Origin: Oikopleura dioica
Taxonomy: Eukaryota > Animalia > Chordata
Reading direction: 5' to 3'
Assembly (NCBI GenBank): GCA_907165135.1
Contig: OU015568.1
Location: 620,001 to 684,000 of the forward strand
Length of the DNA stretch: 64,000 nt
Positions 13,640 to 26,868 of the stretch are shown piece by piece. Position 1 is the stretch's first letter. Each line of letters begins with the position of its first letter. The notes beneath the pieces were generated by a model. The model worked only from the letters and a program-made list of their open reading frames with translations. It was not told where the DNA came from and searched no databases. A program made the translations under genes and the position numbers.

Positions 13640-14901
13640 CTCTTCAAATCTTCATCCTTGGGCGCCGAAAAAGGGAGGAAAATGCTAAGCCACTTGGTGG
13701 AACGCGCTTTTTCGAAAAATTAATAATCGTCCGTCGCCAGGCTGTGCGCTCCGAGTAATGGGCCCGCGGGCGCACCAAATGTTCGAAAAAGGCTCAATTG
13801 CCGTGTCAGACGGACTCGGTGGCGCTCTAGAATCGAGAGCCAGGGATGAGCCGTACAAGGGGCTCAGGAAGCCGATTGTTTAATTCAAGTGCTGGACCAA
13901 TCGGATGGCAAAAAGTACCGAGCTTCAAAAGTAGTCAAAAAGTACTGTATGCGCATTTCTGAAGGGATTTATTTTTCTAGGGAGAAAAACAAAGAAACAC
14001 CATAAATGATCTTAATCGTAATGGAAACTGATTTTTTAAATGAAAATCCGGATTAGTATTACTCTAAAACCATAGTTCATTTTCCTTCATACTATGGCTT
14101 AAGGTAATACATTTTTATACTTAACTTCACAGAAAAGCCAGTCATTTCGCCAAAAATGAAGGATTAAGTGAAAAAATCACCCAACTTCAAGATTTTGTTT
14201 TCTTTTTGGGAACGAAGTTTGAAAAATCATATTTTTTATTTTGTAATTTGATTAAAAAACCATAATGGATTTCAAAAGCGGACAGAACTGGATTTATTCA
14301 AATAGAAAAATTGCTGATCCTCTTCAGCAAAAATTTTTCTGCGAGTAAGTTTAGTAACCGAATCGAATATTATAATATATAGGTATATAATATATTAGGT
14401 ATATACCTAATATTATTTTAATATTATATATAACCGAAATTTATTTATATTGATTTTCAGAGTTCAAAAAACGCGCGAAAAAGAAGTTCAAAGACCTTCA
14501 AAAAGGTTTTCAGAAATCATAAAAATGACAGGCCGCGCCGCTATCAAGATCATCATTACCAGGGTGTCAAATCGCGGGGGATCGAGAAGGGATCGCGCGC
14601 CACCGCCCACGCTCGATCCCAAGTCTGAAGGGATCGCTCGCGCGCTTTTTGAACGGAAAGGGATCGCGGTGAAAATAGCAGAGCAAACGCGCGGGCTAGC
14701 GCCAGGCTTCATGCGTGGAATTTTCTCCGATCAAGCTCGCGCCGCTTTTCAAAAACTCAGAACTCTTCGTTATTGTCTCAAATTTTATGAATTTTTCAGA
14801 TCTAGTGTAGTTTTTCTCCTCTTTTTCTGATTAAAATTAAACTCATGTTCAAATTAAGTTTAATAAGTTTGTCTGATTATATTATTTAAAAAAGAAAGAA
14901 A

Positions 14902-16059
14902 TTACATCATTGTCTGTCGACAAAAGGGACAGCGGAAATGAGGAGGAAGGCTTCTTTTGTGACACGCCAAGCACATTGGTGGACACTTTTCGCATTGAGC
15001 AGCAGCAAATACTTTTTGACAGTCATCTCGACCAATGGGACTAAATAATATGTTAAAATGTGAATATTGATACTCTTCCCCTTAAATTTACCACCTAGGG
15101 TCGGACCCCTTACTTAGGTTTCCTTAGTTACTAAGGGTAAGGGTTTTGAAATTGATGAATCTGATGATCTCTGAAAACTCAGAAAGGAACTATGGAAAGG
15201 ATTTTTTTCCGCCGAAACCCGAAAAAGGGTAAGTAAAGCATCCTTACCTTACTAAGGAAAGGACCCTTAGAAAGCAAAAAATTAAGGAAGGAAGTCCGAC
15301 CCTAGCTTACCACTCCATTGGATCAGCGGGAATAAGAAGAACGGGAGGATCAATTTGGAGAGGATCATCTCCATATATTTGTAAGACAAATATATTCAAT
15401 AAACGAAGTCGAAAATGATTTCGAGATGCCGCGGCACGCTTTCGAGTCGTGAAGACGTGTTTTTTAAGCATCTTTTTATCATTTTTTGCTTTTTAGAGAG
15501 TTTTGAATTTGATAAACCTACCGATATAAGAAACATTGGCAGGAAGCGTTGATATGCGATTATTCACCAAATGGTTGATCAAAAACAGCAACGGCTCTTT
15601 TCACGCGTTTCATTGTGAAAAGTAACTTCTCTTTGAATATTTTTTTTATTATGAAACTCTTGCTTTAGACTTTAAGATTGAATTAACTTCAATCAAGCGA
15701 GACTTAGATCTATTCATATTATCCACGAATGTTGCTCGAATCTTCGATCTACCCGGGTCGTTCTCATCAATTTCAAGAGATCTTTTATTTGTTTGATAAT
15801 TTCTGTGCATGGAATAACGAGAGTGCTAGGGTTTCGCAAAAAAGCGAATTGGCACTGCGAATTTAGACCCCTGTTCAAACATTTTCCTGAGAAAAGTTAT
15901 TTTTTCTGATGAAATAACGCACTTGGTTACATAATTGACTCGATCAGATGGTCGTATTTCCGCATGGTAATGAGAAAAGTGCCAGTCTAATGTTTGTGGC
16001 TTCACAGATTTCAAACAAATCGTGCACGCCATGGGGAACTTCCAAGCCTTTCTTGTCAT
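14902..16059 (-). CDS. Transposon-borne accessory gene: N-terminal C2H2-like finger, C-terminal RING-like domain
   Basis: Exon 1 CTICLKSVKPQTLDWHFSHYH. The last exon, joined by TG|GTAAG...TTAG|T, gives MECPIGRDDCQKVFAAAQCEKCPPMCLACHKRSLPPHFRCPFCRQTMM*. Middle exons have plausible short introns but those junctions are less certain. Confidence 0.7.
15095..15305. mobile_element. Small MITE (CTAGGGTCGGAC TIRs) nested in the last intron of the accessory gene
   Basis: TIRs at 15095-15106 and 15294-15305; flanks TTTACCAC and CTTACCAC (7/8 match, putative TSD). Confidence 0.7.
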
Positions 16060-16202
16060 ACTTCTAAACTGATTTTTTCGTTTTCCAAACGTAAGAATAA
16101 TAATTCTAGAGAATTTTCAAAAATAACATATTCTTGGTTCTGAATGCTTAACGGCTCAAAGACTCTCAAAAATGAAGCCTCAAAATCGTTTTTGATACGT
16201 AG

Positions 16203-16555
16203 ATTTTGATTGGCTGATAGACAGTTTCGAGCGTTTTGATTGGCTGATAGACATTTCGAGAGTTTTGATTGGCTAATAGACATTTTCGAGCGTTTCGATT
16301 GGCTAAGGGGCATTTTCAAGCGTTTTGATTGGCTGATTGACATTTTCGAGCGTTTTGATTGGCTGATAGACATTTTCGAGCGTTTTGATTGGCTAATAGA
16401 CATTTTTGAGCGTTTTGATTGGCTAATAGACATTTTCGAGCGTTTTGATTGGCTAAGGGGCATTTTCGAGCGTTTTGATTGGCTGATAGACATTTTCGAG
16501 CGTTTTGATTGGTTAAGAGCCATTTTAGATCGGTTTGATTGGCTAAGGGCCATTT
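16203..16555. repeat. 30-bp tandem array x12, one CCAAT box per unit
   Basis: Unit TTTGATTGGCTRATAGACATTTTCGAGCGT; no unique spacers. Confidence 0.95.
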
Positions 16556-16874
16556 AAGGGCGTTTTAATCGACTTAAAGCCTGATTTATCCGATTTTGGT
16601 CAATTTTTGCGCGACTAAGGTTAATTTTTCTTGAAAATGGTTAATATTTGCATGACCTCGGTCAATTAATGCTTAGAATGGGTTAATTATTGCATGATCA
16701 AGGTTAATTTTCTCATGAATTCGGTTTATATTTACATGACCTCGGTCAATTTATACTTAAAAAAGGGATATTTTAGCATGATCAAGGTTAATTTTTTCAT
16801 GAATTTGGTTAATTTTTGCATGCAAAAGGTTTATAAATGCATGATTTCGACGGGAAATTTTCAGCAAAAAACAT

Positions 16875-19800
16875 TTATTCAAATAGATTCTGTACATTTG
16901 GATAAGAAGACACTTGTAGAATGAGTTCAACAGTACTGGTGTTCAAGCAGTTTCGTTTTGAAGACATGATATCGTTCGCTTTCGAGAAGAGACGTTCGAT
17001 GCTGCCGCTTGAGCCAGGAGTTGAGCGTATGAGTTGTGCGATTCTGGCGAATGTCGGGTAAGTTCCAGCGTGATGCGTGAAATACATCAAGCTCCGTTCG
17101 GCCGTACTGGCGGAGGTCTTGAACATGGGATCGAGCTGGTTCAACCATTGCTTGTATCTTTTGACGCTTTCTTTGCGCTCCATCTTGCTCTCCTTCTTGA
17201 ACCATGCAGAGAACTCATCAGTTGATGATTTTTCGCATTCATCCTCGTCGCTCGAATATTGCTCCATTTCTTCCTCGAAAGTCGACTTTGCTTGAGAAGA
17301 TGGAGGTGTCGGCGGAGCGCGCTCCTGTGAGTTTGGAGGAGTCAACGTCTTTGGCTGTGATGAAGGAGCTGCTGATGGTGTCTTCTGTTGCTGGTTTTCA
17401 ACAGGAACCTAAAATAAAGTTAATTATTAATGCTGTTTTATGTAAAAATTGATCGCGTCTGAGTAAAAATGGACCTTTCCTATGAAAAATTCATCCGATT
17501 TCGGGTAAAAATTTACCGCTTAATGCAAAAATTAATCGAAACTTGGTAGAAATTAACCTTTTTTGGGAAAAAATTAACCAGCTCCGGGTAAAAATTAACC
17601 TTTACTTACAAGAATGAAGATTTCCTCAATTGGTTTGGTTTGCTCAGCTAGGTCAAAGAAGGTCTTGCGCATTGTCTCCTTCCAGACAGGAACTGCAGTA
17701 TCGAAGCAATTGATGAGGGTGTCGTATGTAGACTTGGTGATGAACGAATCCTTCTCAAAGGCGTCGTCAAGTCGGTTACGGATCAAGGTGAATTCGAAGT
17801 GACGGCTAAAGAAGTCAAGGGAGAGCCCGATCAAAGCAGCTGGATTTGCTCTCGATTTGATGTAGGATCCTCTCGATGGCTTCCGTCCAGTGATGTTAGC
17901 ACCGAAAATGTAGTCTGCTACGGTCAGAATCAGCTCCTGGTGGATTTCCTTGAAGTCAGCCGGATCAATTTGAAGCAAGAATTTCAGCAAGTCGAACAGT
18001 TTTGTTAGAGTGTCACCAACCGAGAAGTGATCCGAATCGGTGGACGCCAGAGCAGGCTCGAAGACTTGGGAGACTGAGTGGAGGTAATGAACGAGCTTCC
18101 AGTCGATTTCGTGTAAGATCGACTTTGAGTCAGTCAGGTACTTCTGGTGGCGACGAAGAAGAGGTTCGTTTGCCATGAGCTGCTTGTAGGTCGTGATGAA
18201 AGATCTGAAAGATAAAGTTAATAATTACATATTTTCGATTAGTTTAAACATGACCTCGGTTAATTTTATCGTGAAACGGTAAATTTTTACATGAAAAGGG
18301 TCAATTTTTACATTGAAAGGGTTAATTTTTACATAAAGGGGTTAATTTTTACATTAAAACGGTCAATATTTACATGAAAAGGGTCAAATTTTTCACGAAA
18401 AGGGTCAATTTTTACATGGAATGGGTCAATTTTTACATGGAAAAGGTCAATTGTTACAAGCAATGATGAAGAACAAACCTGAATCTGATGTAATAGATCC
18501 TGTCGATCGTAACGAATTTGTCGTAATTCGGGTAGAATTGCCTGATGTGCTTGAGCTCGTCTTCAGTTGGAGTGTAGCTTTTCACCAGATCATTGAAGGA
18601 TTTCTCGGAGCAGTCGTCTCGTTCAGCTCGATGATTGCATGCTGAGACCGCTTTCTCGATCTCGACACAGCTATCGCCGACGATTGCATCGCTCTGGACA
18701 AGGGTAATATATCTAAAGTGAAGACGTTATTTGATGAAATAAGAATGATGTATTTACCTTTTTAACTGATTCGAAATCGTGTGGCTTGCACAGACAACGG
18801 CGAAGTAGTCGGAGAAGGCCTGAGCCATTGGCGCATCTCCAACAACTGGAAGTCGTTTTGCGTGAAAAAACTCGAGGATATTCCAATCCGAGAGGACGTT
18901 TTCTAGTTGTCGACGTACATTCGCATCAGTTGCTTTGAAGATGACCCCGTAATGAAGAAGAAAAATCGTGTCTTTCGCAGGTTCGAATCGTAAAAGCCGA
19001 TGAAGACCCCAAGGTATTTGCTACTTCTTTCTTTCGTTAGCCGAGGGCAGTCGAATCCATCAAGGACCAAGCAACATCTGTTTTCCTGGATGAGACCAGG
19101 CAGCTTGGACTTGACGATACCATTCGAAACGGTACTTTTGCGCCTTGAAAATTTATATATCCAAATATAATGGTTAATTTTTACCTGAGAATCTTCACAA
19201 TTTTGTGACTGCTTATTCCATTCGCTATTGCCTGATGAGCCCTTGCGCAAAATTTCTTCATTGTTTCGGTTTCAAAAGCACAAATTGAAAGACCATCGTT
19301 CGCAACAACTTCTGCGGCGATTTCCTCAAGCTCTTCGGCGTCGGTTGTAATTGAACGATGGTGTTCTTGGATGTGCCGTTTCACGTAGTAGTCAGTCGCA
19401 TGGCTCGCTTTCGCCAAATTGCCTCGAATGCCAAAGAAAACCTATAAAAGAGTTAATTTTACTTGACTGGTCGTTTTTTAACATTAAAACGGCTAATTTT
19501 TTCTCACGACCGATCAATTTTTACATGAAAGGGTCAATTTTTACATGAAAAAGGTCAAATTTTACATGAAAAAGGTCAAATTTTACATAAAAAGGGTCAA
19601 TTTTTCCATGAAATGCGTCAAATTTTACATGAAAAAGGTCAATTTTTACATGGAAAAGGGTCAATTTTTACATGAAAAAGGTTAATTTTAACTCAAATCT
19701 GGTCAATTTTTTCTTACCTTATGTTTGTATTCAGCATTAGTGCAGAAGGGGCTCCGGCAAATGAGATATGGCGTCGGCGTCTGGTCTGACTTCGTGATTT

Positions 19801-19983
19801 TCTCTAGTTTGAAATCTGCTGTGTAATTGTGATGGATCTCTGAAGTGCAAACGAGCTTCTCATCTTCTTCTAGAATCTCTACAATTTTCTTGAACTCATC
19901 TTTGGTTTTTTTTTCTTTTTCTCAAATGGAGTAGATGGCGGAGAAAGCAAAGGACCTTCATCAAATGGCCGTTTTTGACTCAT
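16875..19983 (-). CDS. hAT transposase, copy 1 (apparent homopolymer frameshifts near 19905 and 18963)
   Basis: BED finger (CRSPFC...HIQEHH), CLVLDGF, VVGDAP, VCASH (CxxH), YYIRF, and C-terminal dimerisation region YPTFARIAQLIRSTPGSSGSIERLFS. Confidence 0.9.
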
Positions 19984-20569
19984 ATTTACGAAAAAATTTC
20001 ATTTTTGACGGACTTTATATTGACAGTACATCTGGAAAGATGGCGTCCTTCTGCAGATGGACTGATTTCCGATCATTAGTAAAGTATCTGAGTAATACCC
20101 CGCTGCGAGAATCAGATATGAAGGGTTTATTTCCAAGCAGCTGAAGATAAAATCACAGAAAAGACGTGAAAAGACTCGAGGTACCAAACAGCTGTGATGA
20201 AGTCAGAATCATGGTGAATTTTTACATGAATAATATTATTTTTTTAATTGAATAAACCAAAGTCGGATTAATTATGGCATAATTTTTCTTAGTATTTTCG
20301 TTAAAAAAGTAAGGATTATTATATGTTGATCTTTTTTTGCATTAAAAATTGATTGTTATTGAATTTTTACAAGGTCGCTCGTTTTCGGAATTTTAAGATC
20401 CCTTGCGCGAAGGGATATCCCACGCGCGAAGGGATCGGCGCGATCCCTTTGTTTATGTGAGCGCTCCCTTCTCGTTGCCTCTCGCTGCGAGGCGATCCCT
20501 TACACCGTGGGATCGAAACGGCGCTGTGGCGCGCGATCCCTTCAAAATCCCCCGCGATTTGACACCCTG

Positions 20570-20920
20570 GATCTATTCATATTATCCACGAATGTTGCTC
20601 GAATCTTCGATCTACCCGGGTCGTTCTCATCAATTTCAAGAGATCTTTTATTTGTTTGATAATTTCTGTGCATGGAATAACGAGAGTGCTAGGGTTTCGC
20701 AAAAAGCGAATTGGCACTGCGAATTTAGACCCCTGTTCAAACATTTTCCTGAGAAAAGTTATTTTTCTGATGAAATAACGCACTTGGTTACATAATTGAC
20801 TCGATCAGATGGTCGTATTTCCGCATGGTAATGAGAAAAGTGCCAGTCTAATGTTTGTGGCTTCACAGATTTCAAACAAATCGTGCACGCCATGGGGAAC
20901 TTCCAAGCCTTTCTTGTCAT
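20570..20920 (-). pseudogene. 5' fragment of the ZnF-RING accessory gene, truncated by the internal TIR
   Basis: Near-identical to 15707-16059; runs into the TIR ending at 20569. Confidence 0.8.
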
Positions 20921-21071
20921 ACTTCTAAACTGATTTTTTTCGTTTTTTTCCAAACGTAAGAATAATAATTCTAGAGAATTTTCAAAAATAACATATTCTT
21001 GGTTCTGAATGCTTAACGGCTCAAAGACTCTCAAAAAATGAAGCCTCAAAATCGTTTTTGATACGTAGATT

Positions 21072-21424
21072 TTTGATTGGCTGATAGACAGTTTCGAGCG
21101 TTTTGATTGGCTGATAGACATTTCGAGAGTTTTGATTGGCTAATAGACATTTTCGAGCGTTTCGATTGGCTAAGGGGCATTTTCAAGCGTTTTGATTGGC
21201 TGATTGACATTTTCGAGCGTTTTGATTGGCTGATAGACATTTTCGAGCGTTTTGATTGGCTAATAGACATTTTTGAGCGTTTTGATTGGCTAATAGACAT
21301 TTTCGAGCGTTTTGATTGGCTAAGGGGCATTTTCGAGCGTTTTGATTGGCTGATAGACATTTTCGAGCGTTTTGATTGGTTAAGAGCCATTTTAGATCGG
21401 TTTGATTGGCTAAGGGCCATTTAA
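21072..21424. repeat. Second copy of the 30-bp CCAAT array
   Basis: Same units in the same order as 16203-16555. Confidence 0.95.
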
Positions 21425-21742
21425 GGGCGTTTTAATCGACTTAAAGCCTGATTTATCCGATTTTGGTCAATTTTTGCGCGACTAAGGTTAATTTTTTCTT
21501 GAAAATGGTTAATATTTGCATGACCTCGGTCAATTAATGCTTAGAATGGGTTAATTATTGCATGATCAAGGTTAATTTTCTCATGAATTCGGTTTATATT
21601 TACATGACCTCGGTCAATTTATACTTAAAAAAGGGATATTTTAGCATGATCAAGGTTAATTTTTTCATGAATTTGGTTAATTTTTGCATGCAAAAGGTTT
21701 ATAAATGCATGATTTCGACGGGAAATTTTCAGCAAAAAACAT

Positions 21743-24700
21743 TTATTCAAATAGATTCTGTACATTTGGATAAGAAGACACTTGTAGAATGAGTTCAACA
21801 GTACTGGTGTTCAAGCAGTTTCGTTTTGAAGACATGATATCGTTCGCTTTCGAGAAGAGACGTTCGATGCTGCCGCTTGAGCCAGGAGTTGAGCGTATGA
21901 GTTGTGCGATTCTGGCGAATGTCGGGTAAGTTCCAGCGTGATGCGTGAAATACATCAAGCTCCGTTCGGCCGTACTGGCGGAGGTCTTGAACATGGGATC
22001 GAGCTGGTTCAACCATTGCTTGTATCTTTTGACGCTTTCTTTGCGCTCCATCTTGCTCTCCTTCTTGAACCATGCAGAGAACTCATCAGTTGATGATTTT
22101 TCGCATTCATCCTCGTCGCTCGAATATTGCTCCATTTCTTCCTCGAAAGTCGACTTTGCTTGAGAAGATGGAGGTGTCGGCGGAGCGCGCTCCTGTGAGT
22201 TTGGAGGAGTCAACGTCTTTGGCTGTGATGAAGGAGCTGCTGATGGTGTCTTCTGTTGCTGGTTTTCAACAGGAACCTAAAATAAAGTTAATTATTAATG
22301 CTGTTTTATGTAAAAATTGATCGCGTCTGAGTAAAAATGGACCTTTCCTATGAAAAATTCATCCGATTTCGGGTAAAAATTTACCGCTTAATGCAAAAAT
22401 TAATCGAAACTTGGTAGAAATTAACCTTTTTTGGGAAAAAATTAACCAGCTCCGGGTAAAAATTAACCTTTACTTACAAGAATGAAGATTTCCTCAATTG
22501 GTTTGGTTTGCTCAGCTAGGTCAAAGAAGGTCTTGCGCATTGTCTCCTTCCAGACAGGAACTGCAGTATCGAAGCAATTGATGAGGGTGTCGTATGTAGA
22601 CTTGGTGATGAACGAATCCTTCTCAAAGGCGTCGTCAAGTCGGTTACGGATCAAGGTGAATTCGAAGTGACGGCTAAAGAAGTCAAGGGAGAGCCCGATC
22701 AAAGCAGCTGGATTTGCTCTCGATTTGATGTAGGATCCTCTCGATGGCTTCCGTCCAGTGATGTTAGCACCGAAAATGTAGTCTGCTACGGTCAGAATCA
22801 GCTCCTGGTGGATTTCCTTGAAGTCAGCCGGATCAATTTGAAGCAAGAATTTCAGCAAGTCGAACAGTTTTGTTAGAGTGTCACCAACCGAGAAGTGATC
22901 CGAATCGGTGGACGCCAGAGCAGGCTCGAAGACTTGGGAGACTGAGTGGAGGTAATGAACGAGCTTCCAGTCGATTTCGTGTAAGATCGACTTTGAGTCA
23001 GTCAGGTACTTCTGGTGGCGACGAAGAAGAGGTTCGTTTGCCATGAGCTGCTTGTAGGTCGTGATGAAAGATCTGAAAGATAAAGTTAATAATTACATAT
23101 TTTCGATTAGTTTAAACATGACCTCGGTTAATTTTATCGTGAAACGGTAAATTTTTACATGAAAAGGGTCAATTTTTACATTGAAAGGGTTAATTTTTAC
23201 ATAAAGGGGTTAATTTTTACATTAAAACGGTCAATATTTACATGAAAAGGGTCAAATTTTTCACGAAAAGGGTCAATTTTTACATGGAATGGGTCAATTT
23301 TTACATGGAAAAGGTCAATTGTTACAAGCAATGATGAAGAACAAACCTGAATCTGATGTAATAGATCCTGTCGATCGTAACGAATTTGTCGTAATTCGGG
23401 TAGAATTGCCTGATGTGCTTGAGCTCGTCTTCAGTTGGAGTGTAGCTTTTCACCAGATCATTGAAGGATTTCTCGGAGCAGTCGTCTCGTTCAGCTCGAT
23501 GATTGCATGCTGAGACCGCTTTCTCGATCTCGACACAGCTATCGCCGACGATTGCATCGCTCTGGACAAGGGTAATATATCTAAAGTGAAGACGTTATTT
23601 GATGAAATAAGAATGATGTATTTACCTTTTTAACTGATTCGAAATCGTGTGGCTTGCACAGACAACGGCGAAGTAGTCGGAGAAGGCCTGAGCCATTGGC
23701 GCATCTCCAACAACTGGAAGTCGTTTTGCGTGAAAAAACTCGAGGATATTCCAATCCGAGAGGACGTTTTCTAGTTGTCGACGTACATTCGCATCAGTTG
23801 CTTTGAAGATGACCCCGTAATGAAGAAGAAAAATCGTGTCTTTCGCAGGTTCGAATCGTAAAAGCCGATGAAGACCCCAAGGTATTTGCTACTTCTTTCT
23901 TTCGTTAGCCGAGGGCAGTCGAATCCATCAAGGACCAAGCAACATCTGTTTTCCTGGATGAGACCAGGCAGCTTGGACTTGACGATACCATTCGAAACGG
24001 TACTTTTGCGCCTTGAAAATTTATATATCCAAATATAATGGTTAATTTTTACCTGAGAATCTTCACAATTTTGTGACTGCTTATTCCATTCGCTATTGCC
24101 TGATGAGCCCTTGCGCAAAATTTCTTCATTGTTTCGGTTTCAAAAGCACAAATTGAAAGACCATCGTTCGCAACAACTTCTGCGGCGATTTCCTCAAGCT
24201 CTTCGGCGTCGGTTGTAATTGAACGATGGTGTTCTTGGATGTGCCGTTTCACGTAGTAGTCAGTCGCATGGCTCGCTTTCGCCAAATTGCCTCGAATGCC
24301 AAAGAAAACCTATAAAAGAGTTAATTTTACTTGACTGGTCGTTTTTTAACATTAAAACGGCTAATTTTTTCTCACGACCGATCAATTTTTACATGAAAGG
24401 GTCAATTTTTACATGAAAAAGGTCAAATTTTACATGAAAAAGGTCAAATTTTACATAAAAAGGGTCAATTTTTCCATGAAATGCGTCAAATTTTACATGA
24501 AAAAGGTCAATTTTTACATGGAAAAGGGTCAATTTTTACATGAAAAAGGTTAATTTTAACTCAAATCTGGTCAATTTTTTCTTACCTTATGTTTGTATTC
24601 AGCATTAGTGCAGAAGGGGCTCCGGCAAATGAGATATGGCGTCGGCGTCTGGTCTGACTTCGTGATTTTCTCTAGTTTGAAATCTGCTGTGTAATTGTGA

Positions 24701-24849
24701 TGGATCTCTGAAGTGCAAACGAGCTTCTCATCTTCTTCTAGAATCTCTACAATTTTCTTGAACTCATCTTTGGTTTTTTTCTTTTTCTCAAATGGAGTAG
24801 ATGGCGGAGAAAGCAAAGGACCTTCATCAAATGGCCGTTTTTGACTCAT
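21743..24849 (-). CDS. hAT transposase, copy 2 (one apparent frameshift near 23831)
   Basis: Near-identical to copy 1; first exon MSQKRPFDEG...YKHK is intact. Confidence 0.9.
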
Positions 24850-26868
24850 ATTTACGAAAAAATTTCATTTTTGACGGACTTTATATTGACAGTACATCTG
24901 GAAAGATGGCGTCCTTCTGCAGATGGACTGATTTCCGATCATTAGTAAAGTATCTGAGTAATACCCCGCTGCGAGAATCAGATATGAAGGGTTTATTTCC
25001 AAGCAGCTGAAGATAAAATCACAGAAAAGACGTGAAAAGACTCGAGGTACCAAACAGCTGTGATGAAGTCAGAATCATGGTGAATTTTTACATGAATAAT
25101 ATTATTTTTTTAATTGAATAACCCAAAGTCGGATTAATTATGGCATAATTTTTCTTAGTATTTTCGTTAAAAAAGTAAGGATTATTATATGTTGATCTTT
25201 TTTTGCATTAAAAATTGATTGTTATTGAATTTTTACAAGGTCGCTCGTTTTCGGAATTTTAAGATCCCTTGCGCGAAGGGATATCCCACGCGCGAAGGGA
25301 TCGGCGCGATCCCTTTGTTTATGTGAGCGCTCCCTTCTCGTTGCCTCTCGCTGCGAGGCGATCCCTTACACCGTGGGATCGAAACGGCGCTGTGGCGCGC
25401 GATCCCTTCAAAATCCCCCGCGATTTGACACCCTGATCATTACCACTTTTTCGCTTGAGTCGGTGAGAAGTTCTTCTTCCGGTTCACTGATCCCAAGCGC
25501 CTGCTACTTCCGATACGATTTATTGCTATTGTATCAATCTGCCTTTCTTTTCTGATGAATTATCTTTTTGTGAAACAAAGATCTTTCTCCGTCACCGGGG
25601 TTGAACGGAGATGGAGATAAGGGAGGATTTGTTGCTTCATTTTTGTTGTTTTGGAAAAAATCAAGAGATATTTTCATCAATAGGATTTAATAAGAATCTT
25701 GATCTTAATGACCTGTTAAGCTTTAACTGTAAAATTTGCTGTTAATTTTCTGAAATAAAAATCGCAATCAAGTGTTCTTTCTCGAAAGCTGGGCTCAGAA
25801 AACTTTTTATTTTCCGCAAAGTAATGAAGCGGCTTCGCGGTCTTTTTTCGTGAGAGCCGCTGCGCGGCTTTTAATCAAGCTCTTTCAGAACCAGAGTCAG
25901 GTTTTCTACAGAAACAGGAAGAGTATAAATTTCATGATCTTTCAACCCTCGCCTCACCCGCTGACTCTTTCAATACAACTTGGCAGAGTATGAAAAAGGG
26001 TTGAATATTAATCGAGCGACGGGGAGTCGTAGACAAAAATTGAGCCCGCCTCACAGCTGCCCATCGATTCTTTTCCGAGCTCCCGGCGTTTGATCAAGCA
26101 CAAAATTTCGACTTCGCGCGAAAAAGCCCTTACGCGCACATACAGTGGTTACCCATCTTAAGAGGCCCTAACTTAAGAGGACTTTTGCGTCAATTTGGCT
26201 TATTTTGTCATCCTAAAAAGTTCCAACTTAAGAGGACTTTAAGCATTTTTTTTTACAGTAAAGAAACTCGAAATCTTTGACTGCTTTTCTGGCTATTTTG
26301 AAGACGATGGCTTTGCAATGTCGGCTTCATCTGAACCTAGAATTTGATGGCGAAAAGGGTGCTTTGCCGCGGTTATTGGAAGGTGGGAGGGGTTAATTGT
26401 GCTCTTGACGCTCGGATATTACGAAACTTGTCGGCGATTGGTAAAAAAGATTTTTGAGAATTATTCTGTTTTATGAGCACTTTTTACTGTAATTCATAAT
26501 TATACATTTATTTGCATTAATATATTCTTTACATTATTTGTACAATATCGCCGTCGTTGGTACAAAGTCAAAGAGTATCACCAAACAGCAAATTGATAAA
26601 ATAGCGGAGGTTAAAACTCAAAATAAAATTATGGTTATTCGAAAAGAAAATCGAAAAGCCACGCCTTGTAGCAACAATTTGTGCGGTAACGCCATTTTCC
26701 TTGGAGCAATCATTTCGGCGTAGATTTTGGACCGATGCCAGATTTCTCGGTGCTTTGGCATAGAATTCGGAGCGAAATACTGATTTTTACTTATCAATTA
26801 TTAAAGATAAAAATTATATTTCTTCATGAATAAATTTAATCTCTTGTTGTTTGACATCGATGAAATTG

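Follow-up and report, generated by a model that had tools for sequence, protein, structure and literature searches.

Does a hAT transposon of Oikopleura dioica carry a second gene of its own? The question is raised by the window analyzed here, a stretch of 64,000 nucleotides (C1:620001-684000) from the 64.28-Mb O. dioica (Okinawa) assembly of 19 contigs, in which the other loci of this genome were also searched. Its short TTTCAG-type introns can suggest a nematode, a reading that was rejected: the nematode spliced leader SL1 is absent from the genome, and the last 30 nt of the O. dioica spliced leader occur 51 times exactly (55 times when up to two mismatches are allowed), the exact form being absent from the control. 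The window contains a hAT element whose transposase gene is followed, on the same strand and before the left terminal inverted repeat (TIR), by further reading frames that we call the accessory gene. hAT elements are treated as one-gene transposons; to our knowledge those described encode a transposase only, and a keyword search of the literature found no description of a hAT element with a conserved second gene. The genome of O. dioica is tiny and gene-dense, its hAT-type elements are currently active and suspected of creating introns, and a factor that helps hATs to move or to escape control would bear on how this genome is reshaped. We consider it probable that the accessory gene is a genuine second gene that encodes a protein with a Cys2-His2 (C2H2) finger, a basic region and an eight-cysteine module, that it has its own promoter and travels with the element, and that the accessory module has been exchanged between element lineages.

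The accessory gene and its promoter array

In the family to which the element belongs (family A), all full copies (the window copy, C1:730272 and C5:13843991-13850065) have the accessory gene between their TIRs, and a sister family on C4 (family B) carries a diverged accessory gene in the same position and orientation. A sequence-only reading of the window had proposed a two-gene hAT with a multi-exon gene on the transposase strand, located between the stop codon of the transposase and the left TIR; its proposal is upheld by these positions, by the reading frames, which recur in diverged paralogues, and by a splice junction (EC|P, see below) that is matched in family B. The A and B accessory proteins are colinear on the same strand over four blocks, with identities of 53% (finger), 33%, 52% (basic region) and 36% (Cys-rich region). 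A third version, paralogue C, is an intact four-exon solo copy, single-copy in the genome, on a 2.9-Mb scaffold (C3:1547433-1548149; L036:3433-4149); it shares 37-44% of its residues with A and about 41% with B, and neither a transposase nor a TIR was found near it on C3. The recurrence of the frames is beyond chance (E 3.7e-17 for exon 1; 5.5e-7 and 1.1e-5 for the Cys-rich exon), and the frames are open over ~200 codons in three paralogues with no remaining DNA similarity, all of which keep a start of the form M[PT]R, the C2H2 ligands, a basic middle and eight C-terminal Cys residues. A decayed fragment of the gene that has lost its last CxxC lies at C4:5670896-5671140. The two family B elements, at C4:376493-382431 (L034:3494-9431) and C4:391232-397170 (L035), are 99.98% identical and sit in an inverted segmental duplication, their flanks being mutual reverse complements; neither has a recognizable target-site duplication (TSD). 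The C3 scaffold that carries paralogue C may be a Y-specific region.

The gene model comprises 207 codons in four exons, all on the minus strand, where the two peptides quoted in the sequence-only reading were also located (CTICLKS...HYH in 16026-15964 and CPIGRDDC...CPFCRQ in 15042-14911). Exon 1 (16059-15881, ATG at 16059) encodes the C2H2 finger and shares 53% identity with family B across 60 residues, and exon 2 (15802-15658), whose 5' border is uncertain (15802 or 15781), is 33% identical to family B and aligns with paralogue C. Exon 3 (15471-15311) encodes the basic region followed by PPVLL...PMEC and has an identity of 52% to family B across 40 residues and of 38% to paralogue C, while exon 4 (15040-14902), an open frame that ends in the stop codon at 14904-14902, encodes the Cys-rich, RING-like domain; over the matched parts it is 36% identical to family B and 43-44% identical to paralogue C, with all Cys residues kept.

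The best evidence for splicing comes from intron 3 (15310-15041, GTAAG...TTTAG, phase 2), which splits the first Cys codon of the Cys-rich domain as TG|T, the codon being completed by the T at 15040. The junction of 15311 to 15040 (EC|P) rebuilds this codon, and we regard the splice as real because the same codon is unbroken in family B, which reads ...YEC PLM... without interruption, and is split by an intron in paralogue C. Inside intron 3, at 15095-15305, lies an internally deleted, hAT-type miniature inverted-repeat transposable element (MITE; TIR CTAGGGTCGGAC, TSD GTGGTAAG / GTGGTAAA), full-length copies of which are ~550-570 bp long, have perfect 8-bp TSDs and occur on several chromosomes. 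The MITE was considered as an introner that supplied the splice donor and was rejected, as its 8-bp TSD implies insertion into a pre-existing short intron, which paralogue C shares. The two upstream introns are predictions. Intron 1 (15880-15803, GT-AG, 78 nt, phase 2 on both sides) holds an in-frame TAG at 15828-15826, and exons 1 and 2 share one frame with a single in-frame stop between them both in the window copy and in family B. Paralogue C lacks an insert at this position, the frame is open in the C5 copy as a result of +2/-5 indels, and family B offers only a 42-nt candidate intron of the GA-AG type, which O. dioica commonly uses; the paper on the O. dioica Okinawa assembly gives a median intron of 49 bp and 11% non-GT/AG introns (PMC8008620). 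Intron 2 (15657-15472, GT-AG) has no counterpart interruption in family B.

Upstream of the accessory ATG the minus strand carries 11.5 copies of a 30-bp repeat (16204-16546) with 12 CCAAT boxes, all in the orientation of the accessory gene, spaced 30 bp apart from -483 to -154; the window average is 2.2 CCAAT per kb, counting both strands. Family B has 10 phased CCAAT boxes, some of them inside the diverged module and the last at -153 from the ATG, and no CCAAT array was found at paralogue C. The array is presumably an NF-Y-type promoter (or enhancer) of the accessory gene's own, and, as a simple promoter feature, it is directly testable.

The element, its transposase and its copies

The insertion in the window is bounded by identical octamers, the 8-bp TSD ATCATTAC at 14552-14559 and again at 25436-25443. 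The left TIR (14560-14637), whose terminal 23 nt from 14560 are CAGGGTGTCAAATCGCGGGGGAT, forms an inverted repeat with 20492-20570 and has the same terminus in the C5, C1 and C4 copies. The sequence-only reading had placed the far end of the element at 19983, which is instead the ATG of the transposase; the partner TIR is 20492-20569 (79 nt, 82% complementary to the left TIR). This right TIR of the first unit is now internal: because a head-to-tail repeat of 15707-20569 occupies 20570-25435 (minus strand, 99.75% identity over 4870 nt), the whole insertion spans 14560-25435. With the far boundary moved to 20569 for the first unit, or to 25435 for the whole insertion, the earlier statement that the second gene lies wholly within the TIRs and TSD holds. 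Within the second unit are the transposase, the CCAAT array and the accessory gene from exon 1 into part of exon 2, and its end is formed by the outer right TIR. The 4.86-kb internal tandem duplication begins precisely at the TIR end (20569|20570).

The duplicated, 10.9-kb form is also present at C1:730272-741148, and because this second locus has a TSD of its own (AAATATAC), the rearranged element has transposed as a unit. The C5 copy (C5:13843991-13850065; L013:1092-7167) is a single unit, 95.4% identical to the window copy, with the TSD GTGTTAGC, and a 1.8-kb deletion derivative of family A (C1:5392861-5394657; L014:562-2358), with the TSD GTTGCTGC, joins 14559-14998 to 19215-20570. Each of the four insertions, including that in the window, has its own octamer, as expected of the 8-bp TSD of a hAT element.

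The transposase gene (16875-19983, minus strand) was delineated from its reading frames and from a Pfam match in its last exon. It has six exons (19983-19718, 19441-19185, 19143-18758, 18712-18479, 18204-17610 and 17408-16875), an ATG at 19983 and a TAA stop at 16877-16875, and its assignment to the hAT superfamily rests on the dimerisation domain PF05699 in 16878-17408 (E 2.9e-9; 37 bits, with a cut-off of 21.4). All six exons are open in family B. Relative to family B the window copy has two frameshifts, a gain of two A near 19905 (A9 vs A7, exon 1) and a loss of one T near 18965 (T5 vs T6, exon 3), and its transposase frame is interrupted in this assembly; the T deletion is found in both family A copies that were compared, those of the window and of C5. 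The O. dioica OKI2018_I69 assembly is Nanopore-based (PMC8008620), and because both sites are homopolymers, the frameshifts may be assembly errors. With its transposase reading as frameshifted in this assembly, the window copy was probably mobilized in trans. If the frameshifts are real, family A would be non-autonomous and moved by a B-type transposase, a mover suggested by the identity of the terminal 23 nt of the TIRs compared. Family A is frameshifted relative to B, yet it is the subfamily with several recent insertions, which also suggests mobilization in trans.

Directly after the transposase stop, on the minus strand, are tandem repeats of 21/42/84 bp (16595-16831). Arrays of the 21-bp unit (about AAAGGGTCAATTTTTACATGA) also fill three transposase introns (19514-19711, 18274-18458 and 17550-17603), and arrays of this unit occur in a metagenomic relative, L041, at 1330-1574.

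Domains of the accessory protein

Domain, profile and structure searches of the accessory protein were made exon by exon. The N-terminal finger has Cys2-His2 ligands in all three paralogues, spaced C-x2-C-x11-H-x4-H in A and B and C-x4-C-x12-H-x4-H in C, and AlphaFold predicts a beta-beta-alpha finger at residues 10-45 with predicted local distance difference test (pLDDT) values of 74-84. A Foldseek search of the N-terminal model against the PDB gave no match at E below 3. Exon 1 of family B alone matches PF18658 (zf-C2H2_12), at 12.9 bits (E 0.094), below the gathering cut-off of 27.3, and Atlas features place the N-terminal part with zf-C2H2_12 / GTF2IRD2 / FAM200 / ZBED5 clusters (score 0.87), which we treat as a lead. 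Fingers of this kind belong to hAT-derived proteins, and the accessory finger could for this reason be derived from the DNA-binding domain of a transposase, which is likewise a lead and not a finding.

The C-terminal module has eight Cys residues spaced C-x6-C-x8-C-x2-C-x3-C-x2-C-x10-C-x2-C in A and B, with C shifted by one residue. In all three paralogues the first pair and the loop that follows it deviate from the canonical RING spacing, C-x2-C-x9-39-C-x1-3-H/C-x2-3-C-x2-C-x4-48-C-x2-C. Taking CPIG as a decayed CPIC does not account for this deviation, as the atypical first pair is kept in three of three paralogues (CPIG, CPLM and CELF), each with a Cys six residues on, and the conservation of this C-x6-C pair argues against a mutated RING. 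Across all accessory exons of A, B and C, Pfam returned no family above threshold, and no Pfam RING model matches the Cys-rich domain in any of the three paralogues at E up to 10, so that the RING domain read from the sequence alone finds no backing there. Faint matches fall elsewhere, to zf-RING_11 on exon 1 of A (E 0.068) and to an ANCHR-like B-box on the last exon of C (E 0.46). In a PDB profile search of the Cys domain the RINGs of RCHY1 and RNF4 rank first, at sub-threshold E values of 0.2-1.2 and over the second half only; Atlas features of the Cys exon fall near RING-type clusters, including zf-RING_4, with scores of at most 0.90 that are below threshold; and the AlphaFold2 model of this exon has a mean pLDDT of 42.8 and no usable fold. 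The accessory protein is, on these comparisons, RING-like in its spacing and outside the RING families by the membership searches. Doubt about ligase activity had already been raised over the odd first pair; the Pfam, PDB profile and AlphaFold results give the reading as a RING ligase no support, and E3 ligase activity and an anti-silencing role are both speculation.

Origin and exchange of the accessory module, and related systems

The two halves of the element differ sharply in their divergence between families A and B. In the transposase part, DNA identity is 86-92% in blastn segments and 91-99% in most windows of a MAFFT profile alignment, and protein identity is 95% in the 209-residue exon; from ~16356 to 14697 DNA identity falls to about 50-60% in a forced alignment, and it returns to 86% in the last 137 bp. 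By the Nei-Gojobori method the transposases have a nonsynonymous divergence (dN) of 0.034 and a synonymous divergence (dS) of 0.168, and the accessory genes differ at proportions of 0.42 of nonsynonymous sites (pN) and 0.77 of synonymous sites (pS, saturated). The accessory coding sequence has been under constraint, and the module is, by these estimates, at least ten times older than the A/B transposase split. The introns and untranslated regions (UTRs) of the module are also unalignable between A and B, and together with its age this means that the divergence is not simply fast protein evolution. Since the transposases differ little (dS 0.17) and the accessory modules are saturated, the element is most readily read as a mosaic in which the module was swapped between distant elements or paralogues.

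Outside this genome, two transposase exons led to marine-metagenome hAT relatives. L039, a 3.7-kb hAT, has a similar TIR and a transposase that is 60-70% identical, and L041 is 79% identical in the last transposase exon. A scan of metagenome contigs with the TIR pattern gave two chance matches, neither with any hAT similarity. The second gene is present in A and B and absent in L039, and L041 has an unrelated open reading frame (ORF) in its slot. That ORF reaches a probability of 3% against the accessory profile in hhalign and is not alignable with A, B or C, and no homology is claimed; a search for it in the O. dioica genome gave no match. The slot after the transposase is variable in the elements compared, and the accessory gene is not universal in this hAT clade.

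In the reading that we prefer, a two-gene hAT, the product would combine an N-terminal C2H2 finger of hAT-derived type (SPIN-DOC / BED-like, as a lead), a basic middle region and a C-terminal eight-Cys zinc module that is C4C4 RING-like in all spacings but the first pair. The gene appears to be driven by its own promoter, the phased array of 10-12 CCAAT boxes, and to move with the element. Its protein may act as a nuclear zinc-finger adaptor that binds DNA or chromatin, possibly that of the element, and modulates transposition or expression; ubiquitin-ligase activity is possible and unproven. The module would have been exchanged among element lineages, with A and B each combining a young transposase and TIRs with an anciently diverged version of it. 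Several observations weigh against this reading. The A-B divergence of the module predates the A-B transposase split, and for this reason constraint may have acted outside the A/B elements, whether on other elements or on paralogues in the host; the copies of family A differ from one another by only two synonymous and two nonsynonymous changes. The accessory gene is absent from L039, which has a tRNA-like piece in the slot (L039:4158-5059), and the slot of L041 (871-1224) holds an unrelated, Cys-rich ORF of 117 residues ending in CPICQQ, directly after the stop and on the same strand. A profile of the Cys domain searched against 1.84 billion representative proteins returned one spurious repeat protein and no relatives, and an N-terminal alignment searched against a word-indexed set of 5.8 billion clusters found nothing. 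The in-frame stop between exons 1 and 2 in the window copy and in family B has to be removed by an intron that is unverified, and the Nanopore-based assembly (PMC8008620) means that homopolymer indels may be errors. RNA coverage of 14560-20559 consists of one partial read in four runs bearing the same species label (three bulk poly-A and one single-cell); this is not evidence of silence, because O. dioica lineages differ strongly and the runs possibly come from other lineages.

Other accounts of the gene were weighed against the same evidence. It could be a captured host gene carried as cargo, a complete zinc-finger gene without a role in transposition that was taken up once or more, which we find rather unlikely. 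Such an origin would fit the intact, single-copy paralogue C with no transposase or TIR found nearby, the lack of the gene in L039 and the differing contents of the slot, and the A-B module divergence far above that of the transposase, as replacement from diverged paralogues would give. However, a search for a closely similar host parent, as for Pack-type cargo, found none, the best non-element paralogue being C at 37-44% to A and ~41% to B. Two independent captures into one position and orientation, both with a phased CCAAT array that stops 153-154 nt short of the ATG, would be an improbable coincidence; the element holds a whole gene with promoter and introns rather than a fragment; and paralogue C, which lacks the array, could equally be left over from an old element or have been domesticated. 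A decaying pseudogene or chance ORFs, remnants without present function, would explain the in-frame stops of the window copy and family B, the single partial RNA read (with the same reservation about lineages) and the decayed fragment on C4. This account is highly improbable in our judgment, as the ~200 codons remain open in three paralogues that share no DNA similarity, every zinc ligand is kept, the stops fall at predicted introns where the C5 copy is open, and pN is well below a saturated pS.

As to function, a genuine RING E3 ubiquitin ligase, with control over the turnover of the transposase or with a silencing factor of the host as its target, is unlikely. The eight conserved Cys residues, whose spacings fit a RING apart from the first pair and the following loop, speak for it, as do the hydrophobic I/L after the first Cys in A and B, the CPFCR motif, with Arg after the last Cys, in A and C, and the zf-RING_4 clusters among the Atlas neighbors. 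These features are offset by the missing Pfam RING match, the unusable AlphaFold model, the C-x6-C first pair without a His ligand, and the loss of both Pro and Arg in family B (CIFCMK); moreover, cross-brace zinc modules of transposons can bind DNA instead, as the C-terminal domain of piggyBac is reported to do (PMC5861402). Very doubtful, finally, is a broader scheme in which a hAT-type finger joined to a variant RING would form a factor acting in trans on element ends or chromatin, where it would recruit or ubiquitinate a partner or block silencing. Families A and B would then be a split system in which B gives the transposase and A, which has spread recently, combines a broken transposase with the better-preserved accessory gene; the hypervariable module would be the arms-race face turned to the host, renewed by recombination between elements.

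What appears to be new here is a hAT element whose accessory gene, a member of an orphan zinc-finger family, is conserved and modular. Like Ac, hobo, Hermes, Tol2 and Buster, the element has an 8-bp TSD, short TIRs starting with CAG, a multi-exon transposase with a C-terminal dimerisation domain, and internally deleted derivatives; unlike these hAT elements, it has a second and presumably separately promoted gene. The finger of the accessory protein resembles that of SPIN-DOC, GTF2IRD2, FAM200 and ZBED5 (PF18658) in its N-terminal position, in the helix that follows it and in being the top Atlas neighbor, and differs in that the Pfam model matches only one of three paralogues, below its cut-off. 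Its Cys module shares eight ligands with C4C4 and variant RINGs (CNOT4-type zf-RING_4, RNF4, RCHY1), and its second half, C-x2-C-x10-C-P-x-C-R, can be aligned to those of RNF4 and RCHY1, whereas its first pair is C-x6-C, it has no His, and all of its matches are sub-threshold. The mosaic of a young transposase and TIRs with an anciently diverged module would be a clear case of modular exchange in a eukaryotic DNA transposon. Elsewhere among DNA transposons, PIF/Harbinger, MuDR, En/Spm and VANDAL21 encode a Myb-like ORF1, mudrB, TnpA and VANC, respectively, beside their transposases. The element described here resembles them in having a second, non-catalytic and probably DNA-binding protein within its TIRs, and differs from them in its superfamily and in its unrelated protein (C2H2 plus eight Cys); if the second zinc-finger gene is kept, hAT would join PIF/Harbinger, Mutator and CACTA as a superfamily with accessory proteins.

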